From positions 1,116,001 through 1,180,000 of the forward strand of contig OZ218961.1 of the NCBI GenBank assembly GCA_965112735.1: DNA of 64,000 bases, given 5' to 3'. The stretch's first letter is position 1, and each line of letters opens with the position of its first letter. Under the pieces are notes generated by a model. That model searched no databases. It was not told the origin of the DNA and was given only the letters and a program-made list of their open reading frames with translations. This stretch comes from Phaeosaccion multiseriatum. Taxonomy: Eukaryota; Protista; Ochrophyta, other classes. Shown here one piece after another: positions 1,485-50,827 of the stretch. The position numbers and the translations under genes were made by a program.

Positions 1485-2546
1485 ATGCAGGGGGCTAAGG
1501 GGGGTGGTGGGCGGGGCTGCCTCTTTTGCCTGGCGCAACCGGGCCAACAGCAGCACTACAGTTGTGAGCGCGTGGACCTCGCAAGTATTCGCTTCGAGTC
1601 AGAGCCAGGCAGACGTTCTTAGCCGCTCTTTCTTACGTAGTACTACGAAAGATGGAGACAGACCTTTTTACTTCGCGGGCGGCCTCTGAGCCAGGAACTG
1701 TGGAATAAAAGCGTTACCTTCCGCTCTGCCCCCCCTCCAGCTAGCCCCGTCCGTCCTGTTCGGAAGGCGCCACTCTGCATCAGGCATACAGTAGTCAGTA
1801 GCAATGTGGGTGCGTGTGTGGGAGGGCCGGCTATCTGAGATTTGGAACTCATGCATACGTAAGGATTAGTTCACAATTTCAGTTCTGTTTGCCATTTGGA
1901 TTGCTGAGAGAGTCACGAGGTGGAGCTCAAGACGACAGTGGCACCGTATATGAAAGGGTAGGGGGGGGTAAGAAAGGTGGAGAAGAACGAGCCGAGAACG
2001 GCCGTCATCACGGTCCAGTCAGGGAAGAACGGCATCTTAGCTAGCACTTGGGCCGAGCGGCGCCAGTTGGGACAAAAATTCAAACGGGGGCTTGCGAGAG
2101 CAGAGACTTGGTACTGCCTCTGCGCAGCAGGAGGAGGACGCAGGCTCTCCAGCAGCAGAGGGGGCGCTCAGAACAGCACATCAGCCCTAGTAAGGGCTGC
2201 TGAAGAGCAGGCTGTGGAGTGAAGGCGCGAGAGGAGGTGGCGTTGGGACAGCCCTGGAAGCCGGCTCTCATATCGACGTTCAGCAGAGATCACTCAACAG
2301 CCGCAGACAGCAGCAGGGAGAGGTCAGAGCAAGACACAGACCGCAACAAGGGCTATTGAGGAGCACATATACGCTGCTGGGAGCAAGTGGCGCAGCGAGA
2401 AAGGAACCACTTGAGCATCCAAAGAAAATTGTTCGGTACGGTGCACACGCAGCATAGACGCACACCACGGACAGGGCAGGAGCAGGGAGACCTTATAGCA
2501 GGACAAGAAGGGCTGCTCAAGAGGAGCTCACTCAAGCGTAAAGGAG

Positions 2547-4040
2547 ATGGCGAGGGCGCAGCGAGCAGCGAGACAGCCGATTCCACGGGTGAGCGAGGGG
2601 GGGGCTGTCGCTGCGGTGGATCCTCGCACAAGCTCTGATGCATCGTTCATCGAGCTGCTCCTGGACTTGCATCAAGACCCAAGCATGCACGACACCATAC
2701 GCTTTGAGAATGGTGAGTGAGTGAGTTCGTTCAATGCATACCTCCCCTGCTCATGTTCCTTTGTGTTGCCCGTTCCGAGACGTCAATTGGCTTCCAATGC
2801 TCACTCCTGAACAATTGCGTCTCTCGACTCTGGAAGGTACCCTCACTGTCCACAGCAAGGTGGGCGTCATGAAGACGGTGACAAGATTCAAAAGGTGAGA
2901 AGAAGTGCGCAAGCGAGAAGGGCGCCAACCCTCCCCCGCCGCAGCTGCTCACCCCCACCAAGGACTCGAGCGTGCCCTCACCCTTGTGTCGCGCTTCCGC
3001 CGCCTGCATGCACTCGCCTTTTATTGTCTTGCCTCAGCTTCGCGAACTTTGCCCGCCAGCTCAGCTACTATCACTTCAAGCTGGTGAAAGCTGGTGAAGG
3101 GGTCCGCAAACACTTGGACACGGCGCGCTTCGTCCTGGACCCGATACTGGCTAAGGTAGGGCATGCAAATTTGCTCCAGCCCTGGCCCACTCCCAATGGG
3201 GCGAACTTTGGCGCCACAATCCTTAGGGGCCTTCCGAGGAAACAGAGCGTCAAGAGCGTCAAGAGCGGGAAGAGCGGGAAGGGACGCACGAAGGGCCGTA
3301 GCGGTCCTGCAAGCAAGAAGCCGATCATGATCAAGGGGGGGAGAGCGGGGGGCATCGAAATGGCCGTCAACAGCGTCAAGAGAGGCAAGGAGTGCCACAA
3401 GATGAGAAAGCCTAAGCTTGCTCATGAGGAGGAGGAGGAGGCGGACAAGGAGGAGGAGGAGGAGGAGGAGGAGGAGGACCAGGAGGAGAGGAACAGGGGG
3501 ACGACGACAGCAGATGGCGACGAGGAGGGAGCGGAGGGAGTGCAGGAGTTGCGTCGAGGCTCGTCAACACTTCCTACGCCCCACCAGATGCAAGCGATAG
3601 CTGCTACGGACACCGCCGCCGCTGCTGGTGCTGTAGCTGCTCCCAGTGATGGTGGGTTCGAAGCCGCTGCCGCCGCCGCTGCTGCTGCTGCTGCTGCTGC
3701 TCCAAGAGGTTGTGGGCTGTGGGGGCTTATGAAGCGGCCTCTGAGTTCAGGGGTCACTCCGGTGGACGGAGGGCAGGAGGGAGGGGACGGGGGCAGCAGC
3801 GGTGGTGCCGTGGGCGAAATCCGCTTCCTTTGTCCTGACCTTCCGAAAGGGCAGCGACGACCCTTCCTTTTGCGACCAAACATGAGCCCCCGAGCGTTGA
3901 ATGCCTGCTTCGAGCCCGAGAGCAACGGCCTTGTACTGCCTTCCGCAGTGGAGGTGGAAGCGATCAAGCCACTGGACGAGTCAGAGGAGATGGACTGGCT
4001 CGACTTTGTAAGTTTCGAGGAGGGAGAGGAGCACGATTGA
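2547..4040 (+). CDS. Divergent HSF-type DNA-binding-domain protein, paralogue A (exons 2547-2712, 2837-2894, 3038-4040)
   Basis: Spliced product: MARAQRAARQPIPRV...ASFIELLLDLHQDPSMHDTIRFEN|GTLTVHSKVGVMKTVTRFK|SFANFARQLSYYHFKLVK...LLQPW...TILRGLPRK. This matches the HSF DBD layout (F..L..l..D...I.W..G.f.v...F....SFvRQLn.YgF.K...LL..i.RK). A K/R-rich NLS-like region, an acidic run and an acidic-aromatic C-terminus (EEMDWLDFVSFEE) follow. Confidence 0.8.
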
Positions 4041-5604
4041 GTGAGTGAGCTGTGCAGTGGGCATGCAGCCCGCCCTTTGGAGTGAGCCGCACCTTCGAGC
4101 CAGCCAGCTGCAACACTCCACCAGCCCAACTCACTCCTGCAGAGGGCAGAGGTAAGGTAGGGCGACGTTTGACTGATCCTTTGGGGCTGTCAGACGTTGA
4201 TCTATCTATACCATGGTAGGGCGGAGGGTGAAAGCTCCTACTCCGCCCCCAGAAGTTAAGTTAAACCGCCCCCAGAAGTTAAGTTAAAGATGCAGTCATT
4301 GGCTTTGATGTCCCTGCCATATTGGACCTCAGCCGAGACTGCAAGCACAGCACTGCGCAAAAGTTTAAAATGGTGATAGAGCACCGTGCAGCAGTTGGTG
4401 ATACAGCGGTGTGTGTGTGTGCGGGGGGGAGGTTAAAAAATTCGCACACCGGCACACCGTAGTAGAGCAATAAGTGTTCTTTCTATTCAATTAAATATTA
4501 TGGAATAAATGGGAGGAATCAATCTACTCAAAGCGGCTTCCTTCGGAGCTGCTGCACCATGGTCTGTAGCCCAACATTCCGTCACATCACGCAGTTTGTC
4601 CTCTTCTCGCTGCTCTCTCCTTCTCACCCCGCTCTCTATCCCATCCCTCCCCCTCTCCCTCTCGCCCTCCCTCTCGATGTTGCATTCTCTCTCTCTTCCC
4701 TCTCTTTCTCTCCCTCCCTCTCGCACGCACGCACACGTCCTCCCATTCTCCCGAGGAATGATCGAGAAGGCAAGGCAAGCCACAAAGTCTCCGCTCTGCC
4801 CCCCCCCCGGCCCGTCCGTCCTGTTCGGAAGGCGCCACTCTGCATCAGGCATAGTCAGTAGCAGTGTGGGCGCGTGTGTGGGAGGGCCGGCTATCTGAAA
4901 TTTGGAACTCATACTTACGTAAGGATTAGTTCACAATTTCAGTGCTACTTGCCATTTGGATTGCTGAGAGAGTCACGAGGTGGAGCTCAAGACGACAGTG
5001 GCAGCGTATATGACAGTGCCAGGGGTGTTTTGCAAGGTGGAGAAGAACGAGCCGAGAACGGCCGTCGACGCGGTCCAGTCAGGGAAGAATGGCATCTTAG
5101 CTAGCACTTGGGCCGAGCGGCGCCAGTTGGGCAAAAATTCAAACGGGGGCTTGCGAGAGCAGAGACTTGATACTGCCTCTGTGCAGCAGGAGAGAAAGAC
5201 TGCTCACCAGCAGCCGAGAGAGACCTCAGAACAGCACGTCAGCCACCATATAGGCTGCTGAAGAGTAGGCTGTGGAGTGAAGGCGCGAGAGGAGGCAGCG
5301 TTGGGACAGCCCTGGAAGCCGGCTTTCATCTCGACGCTCAGCAGAGATCACGCACCAGCCGCAGACAGCAGCAGGGAGAGGTCAGAGCAAGACACAGACC
5401 GCAAGAAGGGCTATTGAGGAGCACAGGTACGCTGCTGGGAGCACGTGGCGCAGAGGGAAAGGAACCACTTGAGCATCCAAAGAAAGTTGTTCGGTACGGG
5501 GCACACGCAGCAGAGGCGCACACCACGGACACGGTAGGAGCAGAGGGACCTTATAGCAGGACAAAAAGGGCTGCTCAAGAGGAGCTCACTCAAGCGTAGA
5601 GGAG

Positions 5605-6937
5605 ATGGCGAGGGCGCAGGGAGCAGGGAACCAGCGCATCGCCCAAGTTGAAGGGAGGACTGAAGCTGCAGTTGATCCTCGCACAAGCTCTGATGCATCG
5701 TTCATCGATCTGCTCCTGGACTTGCATCAGGACCCAAAGATGCACGGCATCATACGCTTTGAGAATGGTGAGTGAGTGGGTTCGTTCAATGCCTCCCCTG
5801 CTCATGCTCCTTTGTGTTGCCCGTTCCGAGACGTCAATTGGCTTCCAATGCTCACCCCTGAAGAATTGCGTCTCGACCCTGGAAGGTACCCTCACTGTTT
5901 ACAGCAAGGTGGGCGTCATGAAGGCCGTGACGGCAAGGCTCAATAGGTAAGAAGAGGGAATGCGTGCGGCAGGATGGGGAGTCAACACACCTCGCTCCGC
6001 CCAGCTGCTTTCCCATGTTCTAGCAAACTGCAGGCTTTAACTCACCCTCGTATCGCTCTTCCGCTGCCTGCATTGCATTCGACTCTTTTCTCCTTACCTC
6101 AGTTTCGACAACTTTGCCCGCCAGCTCAGCTACCATCACTTCAGGCTAGTGAGAGAGGTCCACAAGCACCCGGACACGGCGCGCTTCGTCCTGGACTCGT
6201 CCTTGCTGAAGCAGCTTGGGCGTGCAGATTTGCTCAAGCCCTGGCCCTCATCCAACTTGTCTAACTATGGCGCCACAATCCTTCAAAGCCTTCCCAGGAG
6301 GAAGCCGAACAACACCACGAGCGTTGAGGGCGGGCAGGGAAGCGCCACGGCTCTGGAGACGGCCACCAAGAGCGTCAAGAGGGGTAAGGAGTGTCGCAAG
6401 ACGAGCAAGCTTAAGCTTGCCAAGGAGGAGAAGGAGGAGGAGGAGGAGCAGGGGAAGGAGCAGGAGCAGGGGAAGGAGCAGGAGAGGGAGAGGAAAGGGG
6501 GAAGGATGGCAGCAGATGACGATGAGAAGGGGGCGGAGGGAGAGCAGGAGCTGCATCGAGGCTCCTCAACACACGATAAAGCTTGCCAGACGGAAGGAGG
6601 GGCGGCTGCTCCACCGGCTGCTGCTGCTCCCCATCGTGGTGAGAGGCGGAGGAGGCATAGGCAGCCTCGTGGTGCAGCGCTCACACAGGAGGATGACGGG
6701 CAGGAGGGAGGGGGTAGGAAGGACAGCCGCGGCGGTGCGATGGGCGGAGTCCGCTGCCTCTGTCCTGACCATCCACAAGGGCAGCGAGAACCCTTCTTTT
6801 GGCGCCCAATCATGAGCCCAAGCTTAAACTTGAGCAAACTCAGCAGGAATGCCACGCCGTTCCGACCGGGGAGCCTTGACCTTCCGACGAGTGCCGTATG
6901 GGAGAAAGAAGACCCTCGCTTCCTGTACGCTCTTTGA
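5605..6937 (+). CDS. Divergent HSF-type DBD protein, paralogue B (exons 5605-5767, 5886-5946, 6103-6937)
   Basis: Same intron positions and phases as A: ...SFIDLLLDLHQDPKMHGIIRFEN|GTLTVYSKVGVMKAVTARLN|SFDNFARQLSYHHFRLVREVHKHPDTARFVLD...TILQSLPRRK... Confidence 0.78.
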
Positions 6938-7019
6938 GAGCCCTTCCGTGCCCATCTACCCCACGGAGCTGCTGCTGGATGCGCGTGCGACGATGTACGT
7001 TGAGGAAGGGGGGGAGCGC

Positions 7020-7238
7020 GAGTGAGTGAGTGAGTGAGTGAGCCAGTGAGTGTGTGTGAGTGAGTGACTGAGTGTGTGCGTGTGATTGAGTGAGTGTGTG
7101 CGAGACTGAGTTACTGACTGACTGAGTGAGTGAGTGAGTGAGTGAGTGAGTGAGTGAGTGAGTGAGTGAGTGAGTGAGTGAGTGAGTGAGTGAGTGAGTG
7201 AGTGAGTGAGTGAGTGAGTGAGTGAGTGAGTGAGTGAG
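7020..7238. repeat. (GAGT)n microsatellite in the 3' flank of paralogue B
   Basis: Directly visible. The same site carries ~2-3 units after A and D, and ~13 units after E. Confidence 0.95.
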
Positions 7239-8144
7239 CTGTGCAGTGGGCATGCAGCCCGCCCTTTGCAGTGAGCCGGCCCCTTCGAGCCAGCCAGCTG
7301 CAACACTCCGCCCCCCCCCCCCCCACACTCCTCCACAGGTAAGGTATGGCGTCCTCTGACCGATCCTTTGGGGCTGTCAGACGTCGTTCTATACGATGGT
7401 GGGGCGGGGAGTCCAAGCTCCCACCTCGCTCCATCAAGTTAAGTTAACAGATGCAGCGCGCGGCCTTGACGTCGCTGCCATATTGGACTTCAGCCGAGGC
7501 AACGGCAATACACGGCACAACAGTTGGTGATACAAGCCCACATGGCAGCAGTTGGTAATACCGCACAGCAGCACTCACTTGGCAACCCCCCCTCGTTCCT
7601 GTGTATGTGTGGGCTTGCCTTTGTCTACCTGTCTCTTTGGCTATCGGCTACTCTCCCTCGCGAGGAGAAAACGAGGAGGGTATGGTCGGGCAGCAACACA
7701 GCATTCAAATCTCCACACCGCGCCCCCTCTTAGCCAGCTCTGTCTGCCCTCATTGGAGGGTGCCACTTGTTATCAGATTCAATGCTTAGGCAGTTCAGTG
7801 TGGGTGTGTGTGTGGGGGTGAGACCTGAAATTGAGAACTCATCCTTGCAGAGGAAATGGTGCACAGTGAGTGAGTGAGAGGTGGAGCTGCTGCAGAGGAG
7901 AGAAGCACCGTACAGGGCAGTGCAGGGGGGCAGGGGCACGGTCAAGGGGAGAGAGAAACGAGGACCGTTCCGGGACCTTTCTTCACTTTCAGTAAGTCAA
8001 TGCGATTTTAAATGCCCAACGGTGTCTTTAAGCCAGGGGCTTTTTGGAGCAAAAGCTCAGCTCAGGCAGAGCAGTGGCAGACGGAGCTCAGAACATCACA
8101 TATGGCATCGACGGTTGCTGAAGAGGAGCTCACGTGTATCTGAC

Positions 8145-9480
8145 ATGATGGCAAGCCGGCTGGAGCGGAAGAGGAGCAGGAATAGCGATGGGAAAGTGCC
8201 AGCAGCTCCGGAAGGACCCAAGACCCCAGCAAGCCAGGAGACAAGACACGAGAGCGGGCTCGCTGCAGCCACCGCAAGCCATCCCCGAAAAAGCAGAGTG
8301 AGGAAGAGGGGAGGAGGAGGAGGAGGAGCAGCCAAGGTGGCGAACGTGGGGGCTGCCGCTGCAGATAACCCTCGGGCTAAAAACTCCAAGGTACCCTTCC
8401 CCGAACTTCTTGTCGATTTAACTCAAGACGAGAGCCTGCATGGAGTCATACGCTTTGATACTGGTGAGTATGGTCGTCGGGTGATGTGTGTTCGCTCAAT
8501 TGGCTTCTAATCCACTTTTTCCTCTTCCCTTTCTTCCTCACCCCGCCCTTCACATGAACTAACACTTGTCACTCTGGAAGGTATCCTCACTGTGTACAGC
8601 AAGAAGAAATTAATGGATATCATAGGCGAGCGCTTCAAATGGTGAGAAGGAGTGATTGTAACAGCACAAAGAGTGTGCACCTCCCCCCACCACATCCAAT
8701 CCTGCCCCCTTTAATTGCTCGAACACAACAAAGCATGTCTCACGTTCATTCTGTTGTATCGCTCTCTCGCTGCCTGCATGGGCCCCTCCTTGCCTCGCCT
8801 CAGCTACGACAGCTTCGCGCGCCAGCTCAAGTACTACCACTTTAAGCTGCTGCAACAACAGGACGCAGGACATTCTGACCAGGCCTGCTACACTCTGAGC
8901 CAGACATTGGCTGATGTAAGGTGTGGGCATTTGCTCAAGTCCTGGCCCTCTTCCACCACGCCAGGCTATGGTGCCTCAATCCTTCGAAGCCTTCCGAGGA
9001 AACAGGGGGTGAAGACCAGGAAGAACGGGAAGGGGCGCGCATCAATTCCGAAGAGGCCCACCAAGAGTGCTAAGAGGGGCGTCGGAAGGCCTGCCAATAG
9101 CGACAGGAGGGGGACCAAGAGGCGCGCCGAGGTGAGGAACCCAGAGCCTGCGCGAGAGTTGGAGCTGGAGGAGGAGGAGGAGGAGGAGGAGGAGGAGGAG
9201 GAGGAGGAGGAGGAGGAGGAGAGGGGGATGAGAGAGGAGAAGAAGAAAGGGAGGAGGATGGGGAAGGGGGGGGTGGAGAAGAAGATAGAGGGGAGGGGAG
9301 GGCAGAGGAGGAAGGAGATGGAGGAGGAGGGGGAGGAGGAGGAGGAGGAGGAGGAGGAGGAGGAGGAGGAGGAGGAGGAGGAGGAGGAGGAGGAGGAGGA
9401 GGAGGAGGAGGAGGAGGAGGAGGAGGAGGAGGAGGAGGAGGAGGAGGAGGAGGAGGAGGAGGAGGAGGAGGAGGAGCAGA

Positions 9481-9514
<34 letters not shown>

Positions 9515-9839
9515 CCGAACGACGGACGAGGAAGAGGAGGAGGAAGGGGAGGGGGAGGAGGATGAGCAGGAGGGGCGGGAGGAAGAGGAGGAAGAGGATG
9601 AAGAGAGCCTGACCCCGGGTGTGTTTTCTTTCTTGAAGGCCCGCGCGGGTGAGGAGGCAGCACCGGAGACCAGCTTGACTCAGGTGCTACAGCAAGAGGC
9701 AGCTGGGATGGAGGGTTCGACGGAGAGGATCAGCCTCATGGACCAGGCAGCGGAGCTGTACCCGAGTATCGCCCTGCAAGAGGAAGAGGACATTCTCCTT
9801 CATCATTTTGGTGGTTTGGAAGAGGGCAGCAGCGCGTGA
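8145..9839 (+). CDS. Divergent HSF-type DBD protein, paralogue C (exons 8145-8463, 8581-8641, 8804-9839), with long poly-Glu tracts
   Basis: ...KVPFPELLVDLTQDESLHGVIRFDT|GILTVYSKKKLMDIIGERFK|CYDSFARQLKYYHFKLLQ...ILRSLPRK. Same two introns as A and B. (GAG)n encodes E-runs at 9168-9219 and 9321-9476. Confidence 0.8.
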
Positions 9840-10755: not shown

Positions 10756-11095
10756 ATGAGCTCTGAAGAGAGACATCGTGTCGCGCTGAGGAAAATGGAA
10801 GGCATGGAGGCCCCGTCCCCTTCCTCCACCTCTACAGACCAGCAGCAGGCACCAGAAGGAGCAGCCGCACAGTCGACGAAGCAGGGACCTGCGTCAAAAT
10901 TTCCGGCCCTTGCAGCAGCAGCGGAGGCAGCAGCAGCTGCAGAGGGGTGGAGGGAGCCTCCGATGGCACCTCACTCAGGGAAAGAGAACGGGGTGGCTCC
11001 CGCATCTCGCAACGTCGCAAACTCCACGACCACGGGAAGTAGAAAGTCCACCCCCCCCATAACCACCTCTAATACTACCACCACTACTGCGACCA

Positions 11096-11132
<37 letters not shown>

Positions 11133-14100
11133 CAACAGCAGCAGCAGCAGTGGCGGGGGCAGCGGCGGTGGCGGTGGGAAAACTCCCAGCCGCCAGCCGA
11201 CTGGCAACTCCAACGGGGGGGGCGATGGGAACGGGGAGATCAATGGGGATGATAGAGACGCCTCTACTGCGGAGATTGACGAGCTCGTGTGGGGAGACAT
11301 GGACGAGGACCTGTGGCACATGTTCCAGGTTGGGGAGCTTCCGGACGAGGACGACGACAATGATTTGGACTTCCTGCCACCAGCTGATGACGATGAAGGC
11401 GAGGTGAGAGGCAGGGATAGGGAGACATGCGGAGGCTTATGGTCACAGAGAGAGAGAGGGAGGTTGGGGGGAAGAGATGGAGGGGGAGGAGTCACACACA
11501 CACACACCACACACACACACCACGAACAACCGAAACGTTCTCTCTCCCCTCGTCTTTCTCTGTCTCTTTCTTTCTCTGTCCCCTCTTTCTCCCTCTCGAA
11601 CTGTCGAATGAATGGTACGACACCCGCACACACGCGCACACCCATTCACACACACATAACAGGAGGCTCGCCCCCGAGTGGTGCGTCAGCGTGAGGTCGA
11701 AGATCTCGTGGAAGATGCAATCGTGGAGGGACTTATCGAACCTGAGGACCAGGGGGGTAGTGCTGGGGGTGGTGGGGTGATGAAGAACAGGCTGCAGAAG
11801 CTGCCCCCTGGTTTTCCAGGGGTGATGAATGTGCTCGGCAGGCAGCTGGCCAGGATATATCAGGTGAGAGAGAGAGACAGATATATATATATATATATAT
11901 AATATATATATATATAATATATTATATATATATATATATAATATAAATAGGGGAGGGGGCGGCACGTAGCTGACCAGGAAAGATCCATCCTTATTTGACC
12001 CCTCTCTCCTATTGACTCACAGATCGCGGTGTACAACCTCTTAAGATGCGTGTGGATGCCGAACGATGCAGCAGGGCTGGGATCCGGACCTAACGGTGTA
12101 GCTCTCTCGCAGGCCTGCCGGGCACAGTCGTTAGCAACCTTGGAGAGATTATGGGAGCGCTACGGAGGAGGAGGAGGAGGAGAAAAGGAAGGAGGAGGAG
12201 GAGGAGGAGGAGGAGGAGCAGGAGAGAGGCGTGAGTTGGTGATACAGCAGCAGCCGCAGGTCTCCATGGCGGGAGGGGATGTTCCAGCTGCTTCAGCTGC
12301 TGGGTTGTCGTCACCTCCGCTGCAAGTCGGGGCCCCTCCCCATTCTTCGTCTTCGTCCCATCCGAGTGTTGTCTCAGGTGGTCGTCCTCCTTCTTCTTCA
12401 CAGCCACAGCCACACCCACCACAGCAGTTGGTGGTACAGCCGTCGCCAACCCGACGAGCTCCAGCAGCGGGTGTGGTATTAAGGTCCATGGTGCCGGAGC
12501 TGGGCAAGACGGCGATGGTGTGGGGAGGGGCGGCATTCACCTTGACCAAGGCGGTGCCTTTGGGGCCCGATGGCCAGCAGGAGAAGGAGGGGGAGGAGGG
12601 AGGAGGAGGAGGAGGAGGAGGAGGACAAGGGGCGGCAGCAGGCCGAGGCGGAGGAGCGAGTGGCAGCGCTGCCACTGATCCCTCTCCACCTCTGCAGCAG
12701 CCGCAGCAACTCAGGGACCGATTCACGCTGACCGTCAGGGGCCTGAAAAAACCCCAGGTACTGTCCTGACCCTCACCTGTATCACCAACTTCTGACCCTC
12801 ACCCCATCCTGACCTGCATCACTAACTCCTGACCCTGACCCTGACCCTGACCCTGACCCTGACCCTGACCCTGACCCTGACCCCTGAAACCCAGAGCATA
12901 CTGAGAGATGTGGAGCACTGGAAGGAAGCTCATCCAGGGCAAACGCACAGGGCTGCCGCAGATGCAATACTAAAGTCCTATGGGTGTGATGTGACGCCAG
13001 ACCTGGTGCCGAATGAGAGGGGATTTAGGCTTGAGGCGAACGCCTTCCTGCCAGGTTAGAAAGGGGGGTCGGGGAGAGGGCGGAGCGGGGCGGGGGGGAG
13101 GGGAGGGGAGCGAGGGGGGGCGGGAAGGGGGGCCGGGGGAGGGGGAGGGGAGAGGTGAGGGGGGAGGGGAGGAGGGAGGGAGGGAGGGAGGGAGGGAGGG
13201 AGGGAGGGAGGAAGGGAGGGAGGGAGGGAGGGAGGGAGGGAGGGAGGGTGGGAGGGAGGGAGGGTGGGAGGGAGAGAGGGAGGGAGGGAGGGAGGGAGGG
13301 ACGGAGGGGGGGAGGGAAGAGATTGGCGACGGCGCGAGGAGTAGGTGTAGGTAGGGATGGAAGGGGCTCGTGCCACCATAGGTTGTGGCGGGGTGTATGT
13401 GTGCCTCCGGGGTGGGGACGTATTTCTTACCTCTTTTGACGTGCTTCACCTTTACCTACTCTCTCTATACACAGCCGAAGACGAGTTGATCGTCGCAGGC
13501 CTGCGCACAAGCAGCAAAGGTGGTGAGACAGACTGGGACGCGATTCGGGCCAACCTGCTTCCTACCAAGGCAGCCAAGATGATCAAGAACCGTGTGCGAA
13601 ACCGCAACCGTGCCTGTGCTGGTGGGTGGGAAGAAGGGATGGTACTGGATGGGAAGGAGGAATGGCAGTGGGTGGGACGGAGGGATGGCAGTGGATGGGA
13701 GGAGAGAGGGGATGGCAGTGGATGGGAGGAGAGAGGGGATGGCAGTGGATGGAAAGAAGGGATGGCACTGGACGGGAAGGAGGAATGGCACTGGGTGGGA
13801 GGGAGGGATGGCAGTGGATGGGAGGAGAGAGGGGATGGCAGTGGATGGGAAGAAGGGATGGCAGTGGATGGGAGGGAGGGATGGAAGTGATGGGAGGAGA
13901 GAGGGGATGGCAGTGGATGGGGGGCGGGGGGGGGGGAGGGGGTAATAGTAAGGAGGTAGAGCTTCGAAACATGTATGGGAGCTGTGGTAGCGCATCGATT
14001 TCTCGGTGGTCGGGATGGGGTGTCCATGAAGTGAGAACTGAAACTGAAAACCGACGCAACGCGTCTTGTTCTGTTGGCAATCCCCCTGCCACAACAGGGG

Positions 14101-17495: not shown

Positions 17496-17501
17496 GGCAC
17501 T

Positions 17502-29322
<11,821 letters not shown>

Positions 29323-35900: not shown

Positions 35901-38900
35901 AGGAGGAGGAGGAGGAGGATGAGGATGAGGAGGAGGAGGGGGAGGGGGAGGGGGAGGAGAAGGAGGAGGTGGTGGTGGTGGAGGAGGAGGAGGAGGAGGG
36001 AGAGGGGGGGGGCGAGGAGACGGGTCACCAGAAGGAGGGGGAGAAGGAGGAGGGCGAGAACGGAGGAGGGGAAGGTGGAGAGGGGGGAAGCCTGGAAGAG
36101 AGCGGGGTGAGAAAGAGCGGTGGGAGAAGAGGTAGGCAGGGTAAGGGGAAGAAGAAGGGAGGGGTAGGGACGAAGGCCGATTCGTTGGGCCAAGCTGCAG
36201 TGGAGCAGACGGACAAGGAGGGGCAGGAGGGCGGGGGGGACAGCGAGGAGGACAAGGAGGAGGAGGGGGAGGGGGAGGGAACGGAGGAGAGGGAGGACGA
36301 GGAGGAGGACGACGGTGACGAGGAGAAGGAAGACGAAGACAAGAAGGAAGAGGGGAAGAGGAAGAGGCCCTCGCTTATTAAAGACACGAAGCAACAAGCA
36401 AGCAGGGCACAAGCGGCCGAGAAGGAAGAAGGAGTAGGAGGAGAAGGGGGTGGACGTAGTAGTGGTGGGGCATCGCAGCAACGAAGTGAAAGCGACGGTC
36501 GTGGTGGTATTGGTGATCATGTTCGTGGTCGTGGTCGCCAACTGTCAGCCGGCCAGCGCCCGCTCATCGTGTCGCTCCTCCTGGGCAAGCAGCACGAGAC
36601 TCAAGCCACTCTTGATGCCCTCCAGGCCAAGGTCGAGAAGCTGACTACTGAGGCTCTCGACAAGGACCAGAGGGGCAGGGCGGAGCAGCTCAAACTCACA
36701 CAGGTAGGGGGTTGGTTGGTTGGTTGGTTGGTTGGTTGGTTGGTTGGTTGGTTGGTTGGTTGGTTGGTTGGCTGGTTGGTTGGTTGGTTGGTTGGTTGGT
36801 TGGTTGGTTGGTGGGTTGGTTGGTTGGTTGGTTGGTGGGTTGGTTGGTTGGATGGATGGATGGTTGGTTGGTTGGTTGGTGGGTTGGTTGGTTGGTTGGT
36901 TGGTTGGTGGGTTGGTTGGTTGGATGGTTGGTTGGTTGGTTGGTTGGTTCTTGCTGTGCAAAGAAGTTGCTTTTGCTTTTTAGACTGCTGCCCCATCTCC
37001 CTCCCCTCCCCTCCTCTCTCCCCCCCTCGCTCAGACCACAACTCGCTTCGAGGGCTCCATTATGTCACTGCTGCAAGACCCCTGCAGCTTCATTCATTCC
37101 GACCAAGTCTTCCCCGACCTCCTTAGCGCCGTTGGTCTACCCTCCCTTCAGTCACAGGTAGCCTACTACTATTGGTGATACGTTTGATTGTTCACTTGTA
37201 ACCCCCTCCCTCCCTCCCTCCCTCCCTCCCTCCCCTCCCTTCCTCCGTATCACCAACATCCCCCCCCCCCTTCACAGATAGCGTACATCAGCGGCAAAGT
37301 GCTCCTCCCGATCCCCAACATTTACAACGCCATTGTGCGAGTTGTCAAGGCGGTAAGTGCGTGTCTGTGTCTCTGCCTTAGGAGTGTGTGTGTGTGTGCG
37401 CGTCTGTCTCTCTACCTTAGGAGTGTGTGTGTGTGTGCGTGTCTGTGTCTCTACCTTAGGAGTGTGTGCGTGTGTGCGTGTCTGTGTCTCTACCTTAGGA
37501 GTGTGTGCGTGTGTGCGTGTCTGTGTCTCTACCTTAGGAGTGTGTGTGTGTGTGTGCGTGTCTGTGTCTCTACCTTAGGAGTGTGTGCGTGTGTGCGTGT
37601 CTGTGTCTCTACCTTAGGAGTGTGTGTGCCCGCGCGCGCGCGCGTGTGTGTGTGTGTGTGTGCGTGTGTGTGTGTGTGTGCGTGTGTGCGTGTGTGTGTG
37701 TGTATGTGCGTGCGTGCGCGTATGTGTGGTCCATCACGGCCTCCTGCCCAACCGTTGTTCTGTGATATCAACCGACTGCTGCTGTATCACCAACTGCGGC
37801 GGTAAACCTAACTGCTGCTACTGTGATGTATCATCAACTGCTGCTACGATACCACCAACTGCTGTATCACAGATGCACCGGAGTCACAGGGAGCTCTCTG
37901 GCACGTTTCACGCCATTGCTCAAGCCGCCCCTGCAGTGGGTATGCAGGTGGGTTGTTAAAAGTGTGGGTGGGTGGGTGGGTGTCAGGACAGAGGGTGGGT
38001 GTCAGGACAGAGGGTGGGTGTCAGGACAGGTATGCAGGTGGGTGGGTGGGTGGGTGGGCAGTGAGGTATGCAGGTGGGTGAGTGGGTGGGCAGTGAGGGA
38101 GACACACAGGCGTGTCTCACTTCCTCCTTTTCTCACTCACTCACTCACTCACTGACTCACTCACTAGCTTACTAACTCACTCACTCACTCACTCACTCAC
38201 TCACTGACTCACTCACACACTCACTCACTCACTCACTCACTCACTCACTGACTCACTCACTCACTCACTCACTCACTCACTCACTCACTCACTCACTCAC
38301 TCACTCACTCACCCACTCACTCACTCACTCACTCACTCTCTCACTCACTCACTCACTCACTCACTCTCTCACTCACTCACTCACTCACTCACTCACTCTC
38401 TCACTCACTCACTCACTCACTCACTCACTCACAGTTTACTGACTAACTCACTCACTCGCTCACTCGCCCACTCCCTCCCAAACGCCCACTTATCCCCCCT
38501 CCCCCCAACACACAGGGTGAGCGTGGCCTGTCAAAGTTTCTGTACGAGCAGCAATTACAAGAGCACTCCGGAGTTTCCTCCGCTCACGCCCGTATCAGGC
38601 ACTTACTGGTGTGTAGTAAGTCACTGAAAGTCGCCTCCTAATTGATAGCTTGACTGGGCCCATGCAGTGCCATCCACTGCCATCCACTGCCATCCACTGC
38701 CATCCGCCGTTTCCCTCCGTTCTTGGTGGTGTGCTGCCATATGTTACTCAAAGGCTCCTCCTTTCTTTGACTTTGTACATGCTTTTGAAGAGGGTTAGGG
38801 TATGGGTGCTCGATGGAGCGACTGACTAGCGCACACATGCACTGCCATCCATGCATCCATCCGTCCATCCATTGCCATCCATCCATTGCCATCCATCCAT

Positions 38901-39157: not shown

Positions 39158-39188
<31 letters not shown>

Positions 39189-40750
39189 GGTGGGTGTGTG
39201 TCTTCTACAGTAGGGGTGATGTTGCTCTTGATAGTCTTCTGTAACGCTTTCCTCTCTATGCTCCCTTCCCCCATCTTCTCCTCTCCTCTCGCCTCCCCTC
39301 TCCCCTCTCCCCTCTCCCCTCCCATCCATTGCCATCTACAGCTGTCTCACAACGAGAACTTCTCTCCCTCGGAGGAGCTTCTGTGGTTACGAGTCTTTCA
39401 ATTCCTCGAGGAGTTCATCCCTCTCGCCCCAAGCTCAGTCGCCCGGCGGAAAGGAGCAGCAGCAGCAGGAGGAGGAGGAGCAGCAGCAGGAGGAGAAGGA
39501 GGGACAGCGAAGAGCGGCGTGAATCGTCATATGGCGACTCCTTTGATTCCACTCCGTATAGCAAAAGCCGCACTAGAGCAGCTCTTTGAAGGCGCACGGG
39601 AGCTTCGCATCAACAAGGTGATCGTCGCCAAGGCTCAGCGGGCGGAGGACCAACGCCACCACCACCACCACCACCACCATCACAGCTTTACAGATGATGA
39701 CGACGGTGGGCGGGGGATGGCAGTGGATGGGAGCAGCGGTGGTGATGAGAGCGATTTGGCCAAGCGTTATGGCGGAGCATTCCTGTCAGGGCCGAATGTG
39801 AACTCAAGAGTGGGACAGCGGTATGCCGAGGAGATGGAAGCACATCGCCTGGCTGTGCAGGTGCGTGTAGGCCAAGGGGTGGGGTGGAGTGGGGGGGTAG
39901 AGTGAATTAGGGTGTGGTACCGTACCGCGCTACCTAGCGCATACTCTTACTCGTGGTCTGCTTCTCCCTCTCCCTCTCCCTCTCTCTCTCTCCTTCACTC
40001 TTCCTCTCTCACCTCTCTCTCCCCCTCCCCCTTCTCTCTCTCTCCCTTTTGTTCCTCTCCCTCCCCCTCCCTCCCTCCCTCCCTCCCTCCCTCCCTCCCC
40101 CTCCCTCCCTCCCTGCCTCCTTCTTTCCCCCCCTATCTCCGCCTCCTTCTCCCCCTCCTCTCCCCTCCCCCCCCCCCCATCTCTCCCCCCCCCCCCTCTC
40201 TCCCCCCCATCTCCCGACAGAGACGACGCATGCTGAAGTTCTGGGACCGAGAGCTTGCGCTTGGTGGGGTGTCAAATCCTTGGCGGCTTGTGTGTAAGCC
40301 TGTGGTGCAGAACGCGTTTCGCTATCTCACTAGCATGACGCCGATGAGCGGAGGTGAGTGAGCGAGTGAGTGAGTGAGGGAGGGAGTGAGCGAGTGAGTG
40401 AGTGAGGGAGTGAGTGAGTGAGTGAGTGAGTGAGTGAGTGAGTGAGTGAGTGAGTGAGTGAGTGAGTGAGTGAGTGAGTGAGTGAGTGAGTGAGTGAGTG
40501 AGTGAGTGAGTGAGTGAGTGAGTGAGTGAGTGAGTGAGTGAGTGAGTGAGTGAGTGAGTGAGTGAGTGAGTGAGTGAGTGACTGAGTGAGTGACTGAGTG
40601 AGTGAGTGAGTGACTGAGTGACTGAGTGACTGAGTGACTGAGTAACTGAGTGACTGACTGAGTGACTGAGTGACTGAGTGACTGAGTGAGAGAGTGAGTG
40701 AGTGAGTGAGTGAGTGAGTGAGTGACAGAGTAATGCATAGGGTCAGGCGA

Positions 40751-40787
<37 letters not shown>

Positions 40788-42016: not shown

Positions 42017-42058
<42 letters not shown>

Positions 42059-43821: not shown

Positions 43822-44542
43822 GGAGAAGCCTGGACCCCGAGTCTTCTTCAGATGATACTCACACTTTGTTGGAGAAAGCATAGGAAGCTTCTCCATATCG
43901 ACATCGACCCCATTTTTAGAAGTGTTCGACTTTTCTACTAGTTCGAAGTAGTACTTTAGAAGGTCTCGTAGGAAGTGTAAAGTGGGCCCTGGCTGAGGGG
44001 CCGAGAGAAGACAAGAGAAACGGACCGTGCGAATGAATGAACGGACCCACATGGCCCCGCCCCTTGAAAGTACCCCTTGTTTGGTGCTTCCGTGGTGCAG
44101 CACATCCAAAGGGTGGCCACTTTGAATTCATTTGACGTTTAATAATAACTTCTACTGTACCCATCATCTTAGCGAAAGTCCTTCCTTATCTTGAGAGACA
44201 AGATGATGCACCCGTCGTTGGGGTCTGCCAGAGGGTAAAATCTGATTGGCTTCCCACGCTTCCTGCCTCCTACCTTACTTCTTTAGTGTAATTAAAAACC
44301 GAAGCCACTCGCTGGCGTCTTTAACATAACATTACGCTGGGGGCGGAGTAGGAACTTTGACTCCCCGCCCCACCATGGTATAGAAGCGACGTCTGACAGC
44401 CCCAAAGGATCGGTCAGAGGCCGCCATACCTTACCTGTGGAGGAGTGTGGGGGGGGGGGGGCAGAGTGCTGCAGCTGGCTGGCTCGAAGGGGCCGGCTCA
44501 CTCCAAAGGGCGGGCTGCATGCCCACTGCACAGCTCACTCAC

Positions 44543-46033
44543 TCAATCGTGCTCCTCTCCCTCCTCGAAACTTACAAAGTCGAGCCAGTCCATCTCCTCT
44601 GACTCGTCCAGTGGCTTGCTCGCTTCCACCTCCACTGCGGAAGGCAGTACAAGGCCGTTGCTCTCGGGCTCGAAGCAGGCATTCAACGCTCGGGGGCTCA
44701 TGTTTGGTCGCAAAAGGAAGGGTCGTCGCTGCCCTTTCGGAAGGTCAGGACAAAGGAAGCGGATTTCGCCCACGGCACCATCGCTGCTGCCCCCGCCCCC
44801 TCCCTCCTGCCCTCCGTCCACCGGAGTGACCTCTGAACTCAGAGGCTGCTTCATAAGCCCCCACAGCCCACAACCTCTTGGAGCAGCAGCAGCGGCGGCG
44901 GCGCCTTCGAACCCACCATCACTGGGAGCAGCTACAGCACCAGCATCGGCGGCGGTGTCCGTAGCAGCTATCGCCTGCGTCTGGTGGGGCGTAGGAGGGG
45001 TTGAGGAGCCTCTACGCAACTTCTGCACTCCCTCCGCTCCCTCCTTGTCGCCATCTGCTGTCGTCGTCCCCCTGTTCCTCTCCTCCTGGTCCTCCTGGTC
45101 CTCCTCCTCCTCCTCCTCCTCCTCCTTGTCCGTCTCCTCCTCCACATGAGCAAGCTTAGGCTTTCTCATCTTGGGGCACTCCTTGCCTCTCTTGACGCTC
45201 TTGACGGCCATTTCGATGCCCCCCGCCCTCCCCCCCTTGATCAAGATCGGCTTCTTGCTTGCAGGACCACTACGGCCCTTCGTGCGTCCCTTCCCGCTCT
45301 TGATGTTCTTGACGCTCTTGACGCTCTTGACGCTCTGTTTCCTCGGAAGGCCCCTAAGGATTGTGGCGCCAAAGTCCGCCCCATTGGGAGTGGGCCAGGG
45401 CTGGAGCAAATTTGCATGCCCTACCTTAGCCAGTATCGGGTCCAGGACGAAGCGCGCCGTGTCCAAGTGTTTGCGGACCCCTTCACCAGCTTTCACCAGC
45501 TTGAAGTGATAGTAGCTGAGCTGGCGGGCAAAGTTCGCGAAGCTGAGGCAAGACAATAAAAGGCGAGTGCATGCAGGCGGCGGAAGCGCGACACAAGGGT
45601 GAGGGCACGCTCGAGTCCTTGGTGGGGGTGAGCAGCTGCGGCGGGGGAGGGTTGGCGCCCTTCTCGCTTGCGCACTTCTTCTCACCTTTTGAATCTTGTC
45701 ACGGTCTTCATGACGCCCACCTTGCTGTGGACAGTGAGGGTACCTTCCAGAGTCGAGAGACGCAATTGTTCAGGAGTGAGCATTGGAAGCCAATTGACGT
45801 CTCGGAACGGGCAACACAAAGGAACATGAGCAGGGGAGGTATGCATTGAACGAACTCACTCACTCACCATTCTCAAAGCGTATGGTGTCGTGCATGCTTG
45901 GGTCTTGATGCAAGTCCAGGAGCAGCTCGATGAACGATGCATCAGAGCTTGTGCGAGGATCCACCGCAGCGACAGCCCCCCCCTCGCTCACCCGTGGAAT
46001 CGGCTGTCTCGCTGCTCGCTGCGCCCTCGCCAT
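44543..46033 (-). CDS. Divergent HSF-type DBD protein, paralogue D, near-identical to A (exons 45868-46033, 45686-45743, 44543-45542)
   Basis: Exon 1 and 2 lengths (166, 58) equal those of A, and intron 1 appears identical to A's. The ORF 44543..45685 matches 2895..4040 for ~100 aa, then shows scattered substitutions and in-frame indels. Confidence 0.8.
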
Positions 46034-47596
46034 CTCCTTTACGCTTGAGTGAGCTCCTCTTGAGCAGCCCTTTTTGTCCTGCTATAAGGTCTCTCTGCTA
46101 CTACCGTGTCCGTGGTGTGCGCCTCTGCTGCGTGTGCACCGTACCGAACAATTTTCTTTGGATGCTCAAGTGGTTCCTTTCTCGCTGCGCCACTTGCTCC
46201 CAGCAGCGTATATGCGCTCCTCAATAGCCCTTGTTGCGGCCTGTGTCTTGCTCTGACCTCTCCCTGCTGCTGTCTGCGGCTGTTGAGTGATCTCTGCTGA
46301 ACGTCGATATGAAAGCCGGCTTCCAGGGCTGTCCCAACGCCACCTCCTCTCGCGCCTTCCCTCCACAGTCTACTCTTCAGCAGCCCTTACAAGGGCTGAT
46401 GTGCTGTTTTGAGCGCCCCCTCTACTGCTGGAGAGCCTGCGTCCTCCTCCTGCTGCGCAGAGCCAGTATCAAGTCTCTGCTCTCGCAAGCCCCCGTTTGA
46501 ATTTTTGCCCAACTGGCGCCGCTCGGCCCAAGTGCTAGCTAAGATGCCGTTCTTCCCTGACTGGACCGCGTCGACGGCCGTTCTCGGCTCGTTCTTCTCC
46601 ACCTTTCTTACCCCCCCCTACCCTTTCATATACGCTGCCCCTGTCGTGTTGAGCTCCAGCTCGTGACTCTCTCAGCAATCCAAATGGCAAACAGCACTGA
46701 AATTGTGAACTAATCCTTACGTAAGTATGAGTTCCTAATTTCAGATAGCCGGCCCTCCCACACACGCACCCACATTGCTACTGACTACTGTATGCGTGAT
46801 GCAGAGTGGCGTCTTTCAGACAAGGCGGACGGGCGGAGCTGGAAGGTGCGCTCAGTGGAGACTTCGTGGCTGGCTTGCCTTGCCTACTCGACCTTTCCTC
46901 GCGAGAATGGAGGACGCGTACACTGTACGTGCGTGCAGAGAGAGGGAGAGAAAGAGACCAGTGGTGCAGCAGCTCCGAAGGAAGCCACTTTGAATAGATT
47001 CATTCGCGCCATTTTTCCATAATATTAACTAACTTTGAAAAAAAGAAAGACTACTTACTGCTCTATTACGGTGTGCCAGTGTGAGATTTTTTTAACCCCC
47101 CCCCGCCACACACACACACACACACCGCTGTATCACCAACTGCTGCACGGTGAAGTGCTCTATCACCATTTTAAACTTTTGCGCAGTGCTGTGCTTGCAG
47201 TCTCGGCTGAGGTCCAATATGGCAGGGACGTCAAAGCCAATGACTGCATCTATCCCTAGTACAAAATTTAAAATATCTTCCCCCTCCCCCGGGGGGACTT
47301 GTGTAGCCAGCGACGTCTGACAGCCCCAAAAGGATCTGTCAAAAGACCCATGCCTTACCTCTGCCCTCTGCAGGACTGAGTTGGGCTGGTGGAGTGTTGC
47401 AGCTGGCTGGCTCGAAGGGGCCGGCTCACTCCAAAGGGCGGGCTGCATGCCCACTGCACAGCTCACTCACTCACTCACTCACTCACTCACTCACTCACTC
47501 ACTCACTCACTCACTCGCGCTCCTCCCCTTCCTCAACGTACATCGTCACACGCATCCAGCAGCAGCTCCATGGGGTAGATGGGCACGGAAGGGCTC

Positions 47597-48962
47597 TCAA
47601 AGAGCATGTAGAAAGCGAGGATCTTCCTCCTCCCATACAGGGCGCGTCGGAAAGTCACGGCTCCCTGGTCGGAACGGCGCCGCGCTCCTGCTGACTTCGC
47701 TCAAGTGTAAGCTTGGGCTCATGATTGGGCGCCAAAAGAAGGGATCTTGCTGCCCTTGTGGATGGTCAGGACAGAGGCAGCGGACTCTGCCCCTCGCACC
47801 GCCGCGGCTGTCCTTCCTACCCCCTCCCTCCTGTCCGTCATCCTCCTGTGTGAGCACTGCACCACGAGGCTGCCTATGCCTCCTCCGCCTCCCACCACGA
47901 TGGGGAGCAGCAGCAGCAGGAGGAGCAGCCGCCGCTCCTTCCGTCTGGCAAGCTTTATCGGGTGTTGAGGAGCCTCGATGCAGCTCCTGCTGTCCCTCCG
48001 CCCCCTTCTCATCGTCATCTGCTGCCATCTTTCCCCTCTTCCTCTCCCTCTCCTCCCCCTTCTCCTGCTCGTCCTCCTCCTTCTCATCCGCCTCGTCCGT
48101 CTCCTCCTCCTCCTCCTCCTTGGCAAGCTTAAGCTTGCTCGTCTTGCGACACTCCTTACCCCTCTTGACGCTCTTGATGGCCGTCTCCGGAGCCGTGGCG
48201 CTTCCCTGCCCGCCCTCAACGCTCGTGGTGTTGTTCGGCTTCCTCCTGCGAAGGTGCCTGAGGATGATGGCAGCATAGTCATAGCCCGGCAGAGTGGGAG
48301 AGGGCCATGGCTGGGGCCAGTGAGGAAGGCCTGCCTCAGCCAGTGCTGCCCCGTCCAGAGTGTAGGTGGCCTCGTCGTGCACAGAGCCTCGAGCGCTCTC
48401 TGGTAACTTCTTTGGCTTCAACAACGCAAAGTTGTAGTAGCTGAGCTGGCACGCGAAGTTTTCGTAGCTGAAACAAAGCGAGAAGGGGCCAGTGGAGGCA
48501 GCAAGAGAGCGATACATCGGAGACAGCCAGCCTGCCGTTAGCTCGCGCAGGGGGTAGCAGCTGTGGCGGGCGAGGTGTACTGACGATTCGTGCTGCTGCA
48601 TGCATTCCTTCTTACCAGGAAAATCGATTGCGGAGTACTTTCATGAGGCTCTTCTTGCTGTAGACGTGGAGGGTACCTTCCAGAGCGGGCAAGTGTTCGT
48701 TCGGGGGTGAGTATGTTTGGAAGCCAAACGGCGCGTCTCGGAACGGTCAACACAAAGGAGCATGAGCAGAGGAGGCATTGAACGAACCCACTCACTCACC
48801 ATTCTCAAAGCGTATGATGCCGTGCATCTTTGGGTCTTGATGCAAGTTCAGGAGCAGATCGATGAACGGTGCACCAGAGCTTGTGCGAGGATCCACTGCA
48901 GCTTCAGCCCCCCCTTCAACTTGGGGGATGCGCTGGTTCCCTGCTCCCTGCGCCCTCGCCAT
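47597..48962 (-). CDS. Divergent HSF-type DBD protein, paralogue E: B-like ends with a distinct DBD core (exons 48800-48962, 48616-48676, 47597-48467)
   Basis: MARAQGAGNQRIPQV...PFIDLLLNLHQDPKMHGIIRFEN|GTLHVYSKKSLMKVLRNRFS|CYENFACQLSYYNFALLK...IILRHLRRRKPNNTTSVEGGQGS.... Exon 1 and the tail match B. Confidence 0.75.
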
Positions 48963-50827
48963 CTCTAGGCCTGAGCGAGCTCCTCTTGAGCAGCCGCTCT
49001 CGTGCTACTATGAGCTCTCCCTGCTCCTGTTCTTGTCACGTGTGCGCCTGCTGAGTGTGTCTCCCCGTCCTGGAAGAAAATTCCCCGTTCTCTGCTCACG
49101 TGGCTCCGTTTCCTCAGCACCACTGGCTCCCAGCCGCGTCCCTGTCCTCAGGCCTACACCTGTGTCTTGTTCTGATCTCTCCCTGCTGCTGCCTGCGGCT
49201 GATGCGTCGGGATCACTGCGGAGCCCCAACTTCAGTGCGGCGCTTCCAAGGCTGTCCCAACGCGGCTTCCTCTCGCTCTTTCCCTCTGCAACCTACTCTT
49301 CAGCAGCCCTTACTAGGGCTGACGTGCTGTTCTGAGGCCCCCCTCTGCTGCTGGTGAGCCTGCGTCCTCCTCCTGCCGTACAAGGCCATTATCAAGGCTC
49401 TGCTCTCCAAATCCCGCAATCTTCGGAGTGTGCCCAACTGCCGCTCCGTCCAAGCGCTAGCTAAGATGCCATTCTTCTCTGACTGGACCGTGATGACGGC
49501 CGTTCTCGGCTCGTTCTTCTCCACCTTGCAAAACACCCCTGGCACTGTCATATACGCTTCCTCTGTCGTCTTGAGCTTGAGCTCCACCTCGTGACTCCCT
49601 CAGCAATCCAAAGGGCAAGTAGCACTGAAATTGTGAACTAAGCCTTACGTAAGCATGAGCTCCCAATTTCAGATAGTCGGCTTTCCCACACATCCCATAC
49701 CCTGCGTTGTTATTGATGCCTTGTTATTAATGCAGAATGGCGCGCATGTGGCTGTGGCTGTGGTACCCTCCTCCATCTCTCCTTGTGAGAGCGTCCGGTA
49801 GCAAGAGAGGGAGAGGGAGAGAGAGGAAAGTCGGGGACGAGTGGGAGATAAGAGAGTGGGAAAGAGACAGCGAGAGAGAGAGGGGGCAAGAGGAAGAGTA
49901 GGATAGAGTGGGAGAGTGGCAAGAGAGAGAGAGAAAAAAAGAAGCGAGAGAGCGTGAGAGATAAAAGGAGAGAGACAGACAGCGAGAGACAGACAGAGAA
50001 AGAGAGAGAGGGAAGGGGTGGGGGGGAGGGGGGGGAGGAGAGGAGACAGACAGAGGAAGGGGGGCAGGCAATACAATATACAATTGATGCACTTTCATCT
50101 CTTTTCTTGTAGAAGTATTTTTTTTTTGGTATTTTTTTTTTGGCAAAAGGAAATAGCAGTACTCGAAAAAACTGAAACTTCGTGGTCACGCAAGCGGAGG
50201 GAAACCCAAGGGGGGGTCCCCCTTTTTTTTCCTCCCCTCTTCTCAAGTACTTCATTTCTAAAGGCGTTTGTTGTTGCCTTTGCCTCCGGAGCGCCGCGCA
50301 TGGGTGCGAAGGCTTGCATGGAGCAAGTACGTACAACAGTAAAATAAAAGAGAAGGGAGAGGTGATGAAGGGAGGCCGGAGCGAGCAAAACGCCATGGGG
50401 TGCACGCGAGTATGAGCATCATGCTGTCCCTCCTTGGTGCTCGGTAGTCGGTAGTCGGTGCGTTGGTTTGCGCGACCGCCGCCGCCACACTGAAGTGCCT
50501 CGCATTCAATGCCATCGCCTATCGCAGAGGGATGGGTCGCGTTTCCTTCCAGCGACAGGCAAACGACAGTGTAGGATAGGATAGGCACTTGGTGTGGCTG
50601 AGGGAAACGCACCCTCCTTCCACCCAGGGAAATGTAACCGATAGTGACCAATGTAACCGATGTAACCAATGGCAAGACACATCCATCCCTCCACTTGATT
50701 GCGGGCATGAGTGGTGTTGGCCCTACACTCCATGTACACACCCTGCGGGGCGGCCAACCGAGCATGACCACGCTCTCTTCCCTCCCCAAGTTGCCGTTGC
50801 TAACCGCTGCTGTGTCACCAACTGCTG

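Follow-up and report, generated by a model that had tools for sequence, protein, structure and literature searches.

Inverted clusters of mosaic, divergent HSF-like genes around a single-copy block in the alga Phaeosaccion multiseriatum

Introduction

Inverted segmental duplications mediate recurrent inversions by non-allelic homologous recombination, and palindromes show arm-to-arm conversion. On Saccharomyces chromosome XIV, the flip/flop (FF) region consists of a 24-kb block between 4-kb inverted repeats of continually homogenised, fast-evolving paralogues; the region has inverted repeatedly in the course of evolution and is stable on the timescales of laboratory work (Salzberg et al. 2022, PMC9731477). 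In the yeasts Ogataea polymorpha and Komagataella, a block of about 19 kb lies between inverted repeats and is inverted by recombination between them (PMC5720833). Here we describe a locus of related geometry in the ochrophyte alga Phaeosaccion multiseriatum, located in a stretch of 64,000 nt (GenBank assembly GCA_965112735.1, contig OZ218961.1, positions 1,116,001 to 1,180,000 of the forward strand; hereafter the window), in which five paralogous genes, A to E, predicted to encode DNA-binding proteins of the heat-shock factor (HSF) type form two clusters facing each other across a 34-kb unique block.

Judged by the features compared here, the closest known case is the passive FF region rather than the Ogataea mating-type switch. 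Like the FF region, the locus comprises a unique block of tens of kilobases (24 kb in yeast, 34-40 kb here) between inverted, paralogous, fast-evolving and duplicating genes, and the arms of both are kept alike by gene conversion; in yeast, the block inverts as a by-product of the recombination that takes place between its arms. The two differ in that both orientations are documented in many yeast strains and species, whereas one orientation is known here; in that the yeast arms are almost identical over 4 kb, while those described here are 97% identical with a near-identical core of 0.76 kb; and in that each arm here adjoins a divergent paralogue. The yeast arms also encode sporulation proteins and not DNA-binding proteins. 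With the Ogataea and Komagataella systems the locus shares inverted repeats that bracket a block, inversion having been observed only in the yeasts. In those systems, however, different MAT genes occupy the two ends, of which one is under centromeric or telomeric repression, and starvation induces the inversion (PMC5720833), whereas here the arms encode the same protein and no repressive boundary is known. From inverted segmental duplications and palindromes in general, with which it has in common inverted paralogous arms of kilobase size, a mosaic of conversion tracts and a clustering of breakpoints in the most similar segment, the locus differs in no essential respect, and it constitutes a small example from a stramenopile alga.

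The genes themselves recall the HSF families of stramenopiles. Stramenopile heat-shock factors are discussed in a comparative paper on microalgal transcription factors (PMC4827209), and MRM1 of Pseudo-nitzschia, which has an HSF-type domain, is mating-type biased (PMC6261938), as a preliminary description of the window had stated. The proteins described here resemble members of these families in being small, in having an N-terminal HSF-type domain, and in belonging to a lineage-specific tandem expansion; they are unlike them in their non-canonical recognition helix, in a conserved extension that follows the domain, and in that no trimerisation heptads were found.

The locus belongs to a kind already known, that of gene families which were segmentally duplicated in inverted orientation and evolve in concert. 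We consider it likely that the five genes form a lineage-specific cluster, a passive inverted duplication that is maintained by conversion and reshuffled by non-allelic recombination, with no programmed switch.

Results

Two inverted clusters of mosaic paralogues

Each strand of the window carries one copy of a unit of two genes, in the order gene, 3' flank, spacer, gene, 3' flank, and the two copies lie 40 kb apart (Table 1). That both strands share this order suggests an inverted duplication of the unit. Genes A and B belong to the plus-strand cluster, together with gene C, which is an older tandem neighbour of the unit, and genes D and E lie on the minus strand. The preliminary description had proposed five paralogues of identical three-exon structure, three pointing right and two pointing left, and five intact models built from the sequence agree with it: all introns are GT..AG, all frames are open, and intron lengths fall within 117-124 nt (intron 1) and 143-162 nt (intron 2). 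In the alignment, the acceptor of intron 1, at GGAAG/GT (the slash marking the boundary), is the point where conservation among the five copies picks up again. Reading through the introns is ruled out by an in-frame TGA right after the donor of every intron 1 and by a stop at the donor of intron 2 in B and C. Six-frame motif scans of the window recovered exactly five copies and no relics.

Self-comparison of the window by self-BLAST and repeat finding recovered the inverted and direct matches that had been reported. The largest, between A and D, is an inverted repeat of 2.3 kb with a substitution identity of 97.2% in 1784-4118; identity calculated window by window is 95-100% from about 1784 to about 4118. 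The two copies differ by 65 substitutions and several indels, and their flanks differ. The differences are not spread evenly, with a core of 759 nt containing only two of them and the sequence on either side of it being 96% identical between A and D. Both introns are identical, in line with the near-identity noticed earlier, and the A and D proteins are 94% identical overall, with only one of 111 residues differing in the DNA-binding domain plus extension. The near-identical core shows recent exchange between the inverted arms. Other matches are A to B in direct orientation (1720-3240 / 4790-6299 at 85%) and, between the inverted clusters, B to E in the 3' half (6289-7076 / 48254-47457 at 91.5%).

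The young copies (A, B, D and E) are mosaics. We counted the sites that are informative among them in 200-nt blocks. In 1700-4099, 251 informative sites group A with D and B with E, and about 11 favour the two other groupings; in 4100-4299, all 11 informative sites support the pairs A-E and B-D. Gene bodies and the 0.8-kb upstream regions thus pair A with D and B with E, while the 3' flanks and spacers pair A with E and B with D. This is the crosswise arrangement of flanks claimed in the preliminary description, and the strings quoted there are seen in the alignment. We also compared runs of identity in the six pairs of young copies with 2000 permutations of the variable sites: the observed runs beat all permutations in five of the six pairs (p <= 0.0005) and all but one in the D-E pair (p <= 0.001). 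The comparison of B with E is itself a patchwork, identity being 93-97% in part of the upstream region, exon 1 and the 3' half of exon 3, and 64-78% in other blocks. Together with the 759-nt tract, the significant mosaic of the four young copies supports the earlier suggestion of a recombining locus.

The grouping switches at about 4100-4120, beside a (GAGT)n tract just past the stop codon. The junction segment found there is 94-98% identical in all four young copies, whereas the adjoining coding sequence is only 52-55% identical between the two gene types. The junction segment, a part of the 3' untranslated region, could act as a hotspot of recombination or as a regulatory element, or an intron of the untranslated region could begin there; folding the conserved junction as RNA gave no stable structure (z 0.2 to 1.8). 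Its end shortly precedes a conserved AG/GTAAGG that resembles a splice donor.

Two further features of the young copies were observed. In gene E, the sequence from exon 2 to early exon 3 (48274-48665, minus strand) is only 58-66% identical to A, B and D and slightly closer to C (70-78%), while exon 1 and the 3' half are 93-97% identical to B. This pattern suggests that the second half of the E domain could be a patch from an older or unseen paralogue. Upstream of every young copy there is an open frame of 76-78 codons (1814-2044, 4874-5104, 46535-46765 and 49457-49693). We rejected this frame as coding, as the differences between copies are evenly spread over the three codon positions; it is a non-coding sequence, conserved through youth or homogenisation.

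Recombination history

We propose that the unit formed by tandem and then by inverted segmental duplication, and that its copies would have undergone repeated non-allelic homologous recombination, both within one cluster and between the inverted clusters, in exchanges that preferentially begin or end at the conserved junction beside (GAGT)n after the stop codon. The discordance between gene bodies and flanks would require at least two exchange events, since neither a crossover between A and D at the junction nor one between B and E restores concordance when single-event histories are worked by hand. Two histories could account for the present arrangement. In one, a mirror duplication would have come first and conversions of whole genes, A with D and B with E, afterwards. 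The other would start from a tandem array E-X-B-C with uniform internal spacers and a lone inverted copy, which is the flipped form proposed in the preliminary description, and would continue with conversion and one inversion. Because conversion and crossing-over between inverted arms use the same intermediates, a past flip of the 40-kb segment is probable, and its orientation may be polymorphic, as a passive by-product of the exchanges.

Copies A and D in sequencing reads

Three runs of one sample, stored as short contigs (180-830 nt), were compared with positions 1-6000 of the window. Each variant letter or indel that the contigs show between 2072 and 4088, in the A unit, corresponds to a listed difference between A and D, and the three runs carry the A letters and every expected D letter. 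At 2156-2220, the A form has a depth of 60 and the D form one of 47, the depth of the unique flank being 51; in stretches without differences between A and D, depth is about twice that of the unique flank (93 versus 51, and 854 versus 462). Since both forms are found at about single-copy depth and the shared parts at about twice that, A and D both exist as separate copies, at about one copy each, and are not an assembly artefact; the runs may come from the assembly's own sample, and they do not prove the arrangement independently. Loose contig ends at 4388-4407 fall in a low-complexity tract and are uninformative on orientation.

A fifth run, from another sample, contributes a contig that skips 136-596 and 878-1115 with CT..AC ends. 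On account of these skipped intervals we take the run, although recorded as 'DNA?', to be RNA, and a minus-strand gene at 6-1269, directly upstream of gene A, is spliced and expressed.

The encoded proteins

After splicing, the predicted DNA-binding domain consists of helix 1 (FIELLLDLHQDP), a strand (IRF), a second strand (LTV), helix 2, the recognition helix (FANFARQLSYYHFKLV), a strand, a wing and a final strand. This order of helices and strands is that of the winged helices of HSF and ETS proteins. Queries to Pfam, the ESM Atlas and AlphaFold were single exons or parts of exons, and the structural tests cover the half of the domain that is encoded by exon 3. In Pfam, only exon 3 of gene C matches HSF_DNA-bind (PF00447), with 14.3 bits and E values of 0.02-0.06, at profile positions 48-70 and against a gathering score of 22 bits; the other copies and exons, likewise queried as single exons, give no match to PF00447. 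In a feature search of the ESM Atlas, the named clusters closest to A, C and E are all of the HSF type; the scores of 0.82-0.88 are at the level of a lead only. The AlphaFold model of the exon-3 half (predicted local distance difference test, pLDDT, 66) has a helix at residues 2-10, a strand at 13-16, a loop corresponding to the wing, and a strand at 30-33. The top rows of a Foldseek search with this model are the domains of HSF2, HSF1, HSF4 and Skn7, at E values of about 3, and in VIA just three chains, of Skn7 and HSF1, reach Z >= 2 (Z 2.1-2.3); they align over 46-48 residues on the C-terminal half of the domain. A phmmer search with the recognition helix of C instead returned the ETS domains of ETV1/4/5, at an E value of about 1.2. 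Profiles of exon 1 and of exon 3 gave only chance matches to the sequences of the Protein Data Bank (PDB).

The recognition helix of HSF proteins carries the signature F-x-R-Q-L-x-x-Y-x-F-[RK]-K. A more permissive pattern, F-x-[RC]-Q-L-x-x-[YH]-x-[FYW], is present in all five copies and nowhere else in the six frames of the window. Gene E has cysteine for the arginine of the signature; the place of the second basic residue is taken by leucine. Compared with the PROSITE pattern PS00434, two residues are missing before the recognition helix, and serine or lysine and leucine stand in place of the conserved asparagine or histidine and lysine. A crude scan behind the domain found no trimerisation heptads (HR-A/B), the best window of 28 residues having 4-5 of 8 hydrophobic a/d positions. 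The domain is followed by a conserved extension, WP(S/T)...(Y/F)GA.IL..LPRK, then by a basic and then by an acidic low-complexity sequence. In gene C (9150-9600), a (GAG)n tract encodes well over 100 mostly consecutive glutamates and far exceeds the acidic tracts of the other copies.

Taken together, these several weak but concordant results make it probable that the proteins belong to the HSF type. The family assignment of the preliminary description is supported in that the Pfam, Atlas, Foldseek and VIA results agree with one another, and falls short in Pfam, where single exons score below the gathering threshold. Within the type, the proteins appear to represent a divergent HSF-like subfamily without a recognisable trimerisation region and without relatives in the collections searched. 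Ratios of nonsynonymous to synonymous substitution rates (dN/dS) between copies are 0.3-0.66 in the domain and 0.6-0.8 behind it; values of 0.3-0.8 indicate that the copies are constrained yet, by this estimate, evolving fast.

The single-copy block

Between the clusters, the window had been described as single-copy, and from 9.9 to 44.3 kb we indeed found no long repeat apart from microsatellites. Long (GAGT)n / (ACTC)n microsatellites occur in the block on both strands (23434-23767, 32501-32841, 38115-38432 and 40352-40728) and explain the majority of what the repeat finder reported as 'inverted repeats'; the (GAGT)n motif also occurs at the stop codon of each young copy. Of the three genes that had been proposed for the block, a GON4L-like and an AXDND1-like gene are weakly supported by the Myb-like and Ax_dynein_light matches in Table 1, while an IQ gene was not found by a simple motif pattern. 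Rfam and tRNA scans of the window gave no matches.

Table 1. Coordinates of the HSF-like genes, the repeat units and the intervening block in the window.
Feature	Position	Strand	Evidence or remark
Left arm of the A-D inverted repeat (A unit: gene A with 0.8 kb of upstream sequence and its 3' flank)	1736-4265	+	BLAST 94.7% over 2553 columns to 46843-44320
Right arm of the A-D inverted repeat (D unit)	44320-46843	-	D-specific letters in read contigs, about single-copy depth
Recent A/D conversion tract (start codon, all exons coding for the DNA-binding domain, both introns)	2508-3266 (D: 46072-45314)	+	2 substitutions in 759 nt
Gene A, type 1, 408 aa	exons 2547-2712, 2837-2894, 3038-4040	+	introns 124 and 143 nt; sequence-built model, intact frame
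Gene B, type 2, 352 aa	exons 5605-5767, 5886-5946, 6103-6937	+	protein identity 75% to E, 54% to A
Gene C, 471 aa, oldest and most divergent copy, long poly-Glu tract	exons 8145-8463, 8581-8641, 8804-9839	+	sequence-built model
Gene D, type 1, 407 aa	exons 46033-45868, 45743-45686, 45542-44543	-	protein identity 94% to A
Gene E, type 2, second half of DNA-binding domain divergent, 364 aa	exons 48962-48800, 48676-48616, 48467-47597	-	
Junction segment, about 90 nt, after the stop codon next to (GAGT)n	4034-4124 (B 7214-7314, D 44549-44458, E 47486-47386)	+	grouping changes here
A-B spacer, homologous to the E-D spacer (47251-46955)	4288-4565	+	BLAST 87%; 100% in 4321-4394
3' flank of B, homologous to the D 3' flank (44545-44304)	7227-7464	+	BLAST 90%
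Single-copy block between the clusters, low-complexity-rich	9840-44303	.	no long repeats except microsatellites (repeat finding, self-BLAST)
Myb-like exon	13351-13887	+	weak Pfam match, E 0.003
Axonemal-dynein-light-chain-like exon	33514-34290	+	weak Pfam match to Ax_dynein_light, E 0.006

Discussion

Inversion as a by-product, and other readings

The preliminary description was right about the geometry: a crossover between A and D would flip about 40 kb, leaving one copy on its own and the others in a tandem array, E-(D/A)-B-C, and the arms make it plausible that the block can be inverted. The regulatory or cell-identity switch that it also suggested is unsupported, as A and D encode the same DNA-binding domain and a flip through them would therefore leave the coding repertoire unchanged. 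The locus has the inverted repeats that bracket the Ogataea block but not the different cell-identity genes at its two ends, the proteins of A and D being so nearly the same; it does have what characterises the yeast FF region, namely arms composed of paralogous genes homogenised by conversion (the 759-nt tract and the mosaic groupings, p <= 0.0005). A programmed switch, in which a signal-driven flip changes the HSF-like or block genes that are expressed, as in mating-type switching in Ogataea and Komagataella, would thus be favoured by geometry only, with inverted repeats around a block and transcription-factor genes at the ends, and by the mating-type bias that HSF-type genes can have in diatoms (PMC6261938). 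Such a flip would exchange no different genes, no silencing region or second isomer is known here, and Pfam scans of about 30 open reading frames and exon pieces, mostly from the block and its flanks, found nothing recombinase-like; we regard a programmed switch as very improbable. We give as little credence to the 40-kb segment toggling within a strain such that its orientation sets the expression of B, C, E or block genes, for instance by a position effect. A live polymorphism without regulatory purpose, in which both 40-kb orientations segregate among strains or recur through crossovers between A and D, is less far-fetched, as the 2.3-kb arms with their near-identical core show recent exchange and as the yeast chromosome XIV region with 4-kb arms behaves in this manner (PMC9731477); yet no second orientation was seen, the available runs being short-read contigs of one sample and one RNA-like run, and we consider such a polymorphism unlikely at present. 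Misplacement of a single gene cluster twice, in inverted orientation, by assembly or through haplotypes might be suspected from the high identity of A and D, and from validating runs that may derive from the assembly's own sample, but the substitutions, indels and different flanks that distinguish A from D, the single-copy depth of each with double depth in the shared parts, and the identity of only 75% between the proteins of their arm neighbours B and E leave this explanation with hardly any probability.

The affiliation of the proteins allows for one rival, that they are another kind of winged helix, ETS-like or a new branch, and not members of the HSF family. The alignment of the C recognition helix to the ETS domains of ETV1/4/5, the non-canonical recognition signature and the crude scan that found no trimerisation heptads are consistent with it. 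Pfam, the Atlas features, Foldseek and VIA, however, all indicate the HSF type and no other family. To our knowledge, ETS domains are known from animals only, which counts further against this possibility, and HSF-type genes are a major expanded family in stramenopiles (PMC4827209). We therefore think a non-HSF winged helix improbable, though not to the degree of the programmed switch or the assembly artefact.

Several points weigh against our reading of the locus as a passively maintained inverted duplication of HSF-like genes. None of the tests for the HSF type is significant, be it Foldseek (E about 3), VIA (Z 2.1-2.3), Pfam (below the gathering score) or phmmer (which points to ETS). No relatives came out of word-based protein searches in which exon 3 of A and that of C, complete or reduced to the domain half, served as queries; the three matches of an exhaustive profile search with the five exon-3 halves were rejected as spurious, being repetitive proteins with unrelated Pfam families; and a metagenome scan gave 307 pattern matches, with zero confirmed. 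The read contigs, at 180-830 nt, break at the repeat and cannot span a 2.3-kb arm, such that orientation is beyond their reach, and the three validating runs come from one sample, possibly that of the assembly itself. Neither A nor the 5' half of B is covered by any contig of the RNA-like run. Finally, the order of events is not uniquely reconstructable, as both histories involve about four events and are about equally economical. With these points set against the concordant family evidence, the mosaic structure and the read depths, a passive, conversion-maintained duplication is still the account that we find likely.

Implications

The locus documents ectopic recombination that homogenises and reshuffles young transcription-factor paralogues in this alga, with breakpoints clustered beside a microsatellite, and it adds a divergent HSF-like subfamily. 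If the block flips, the locus would offer a clear-cut example, from beyond the fungi and animals, of an inverted repeat built from a gene family that locally suppresses recombination and maintains the concerted evolution of transcription-factor paralogues. Should its orientation be found to toggle and to affect expression, the locus would represent an inversion-based cell-state switch in a stramenopile alga.

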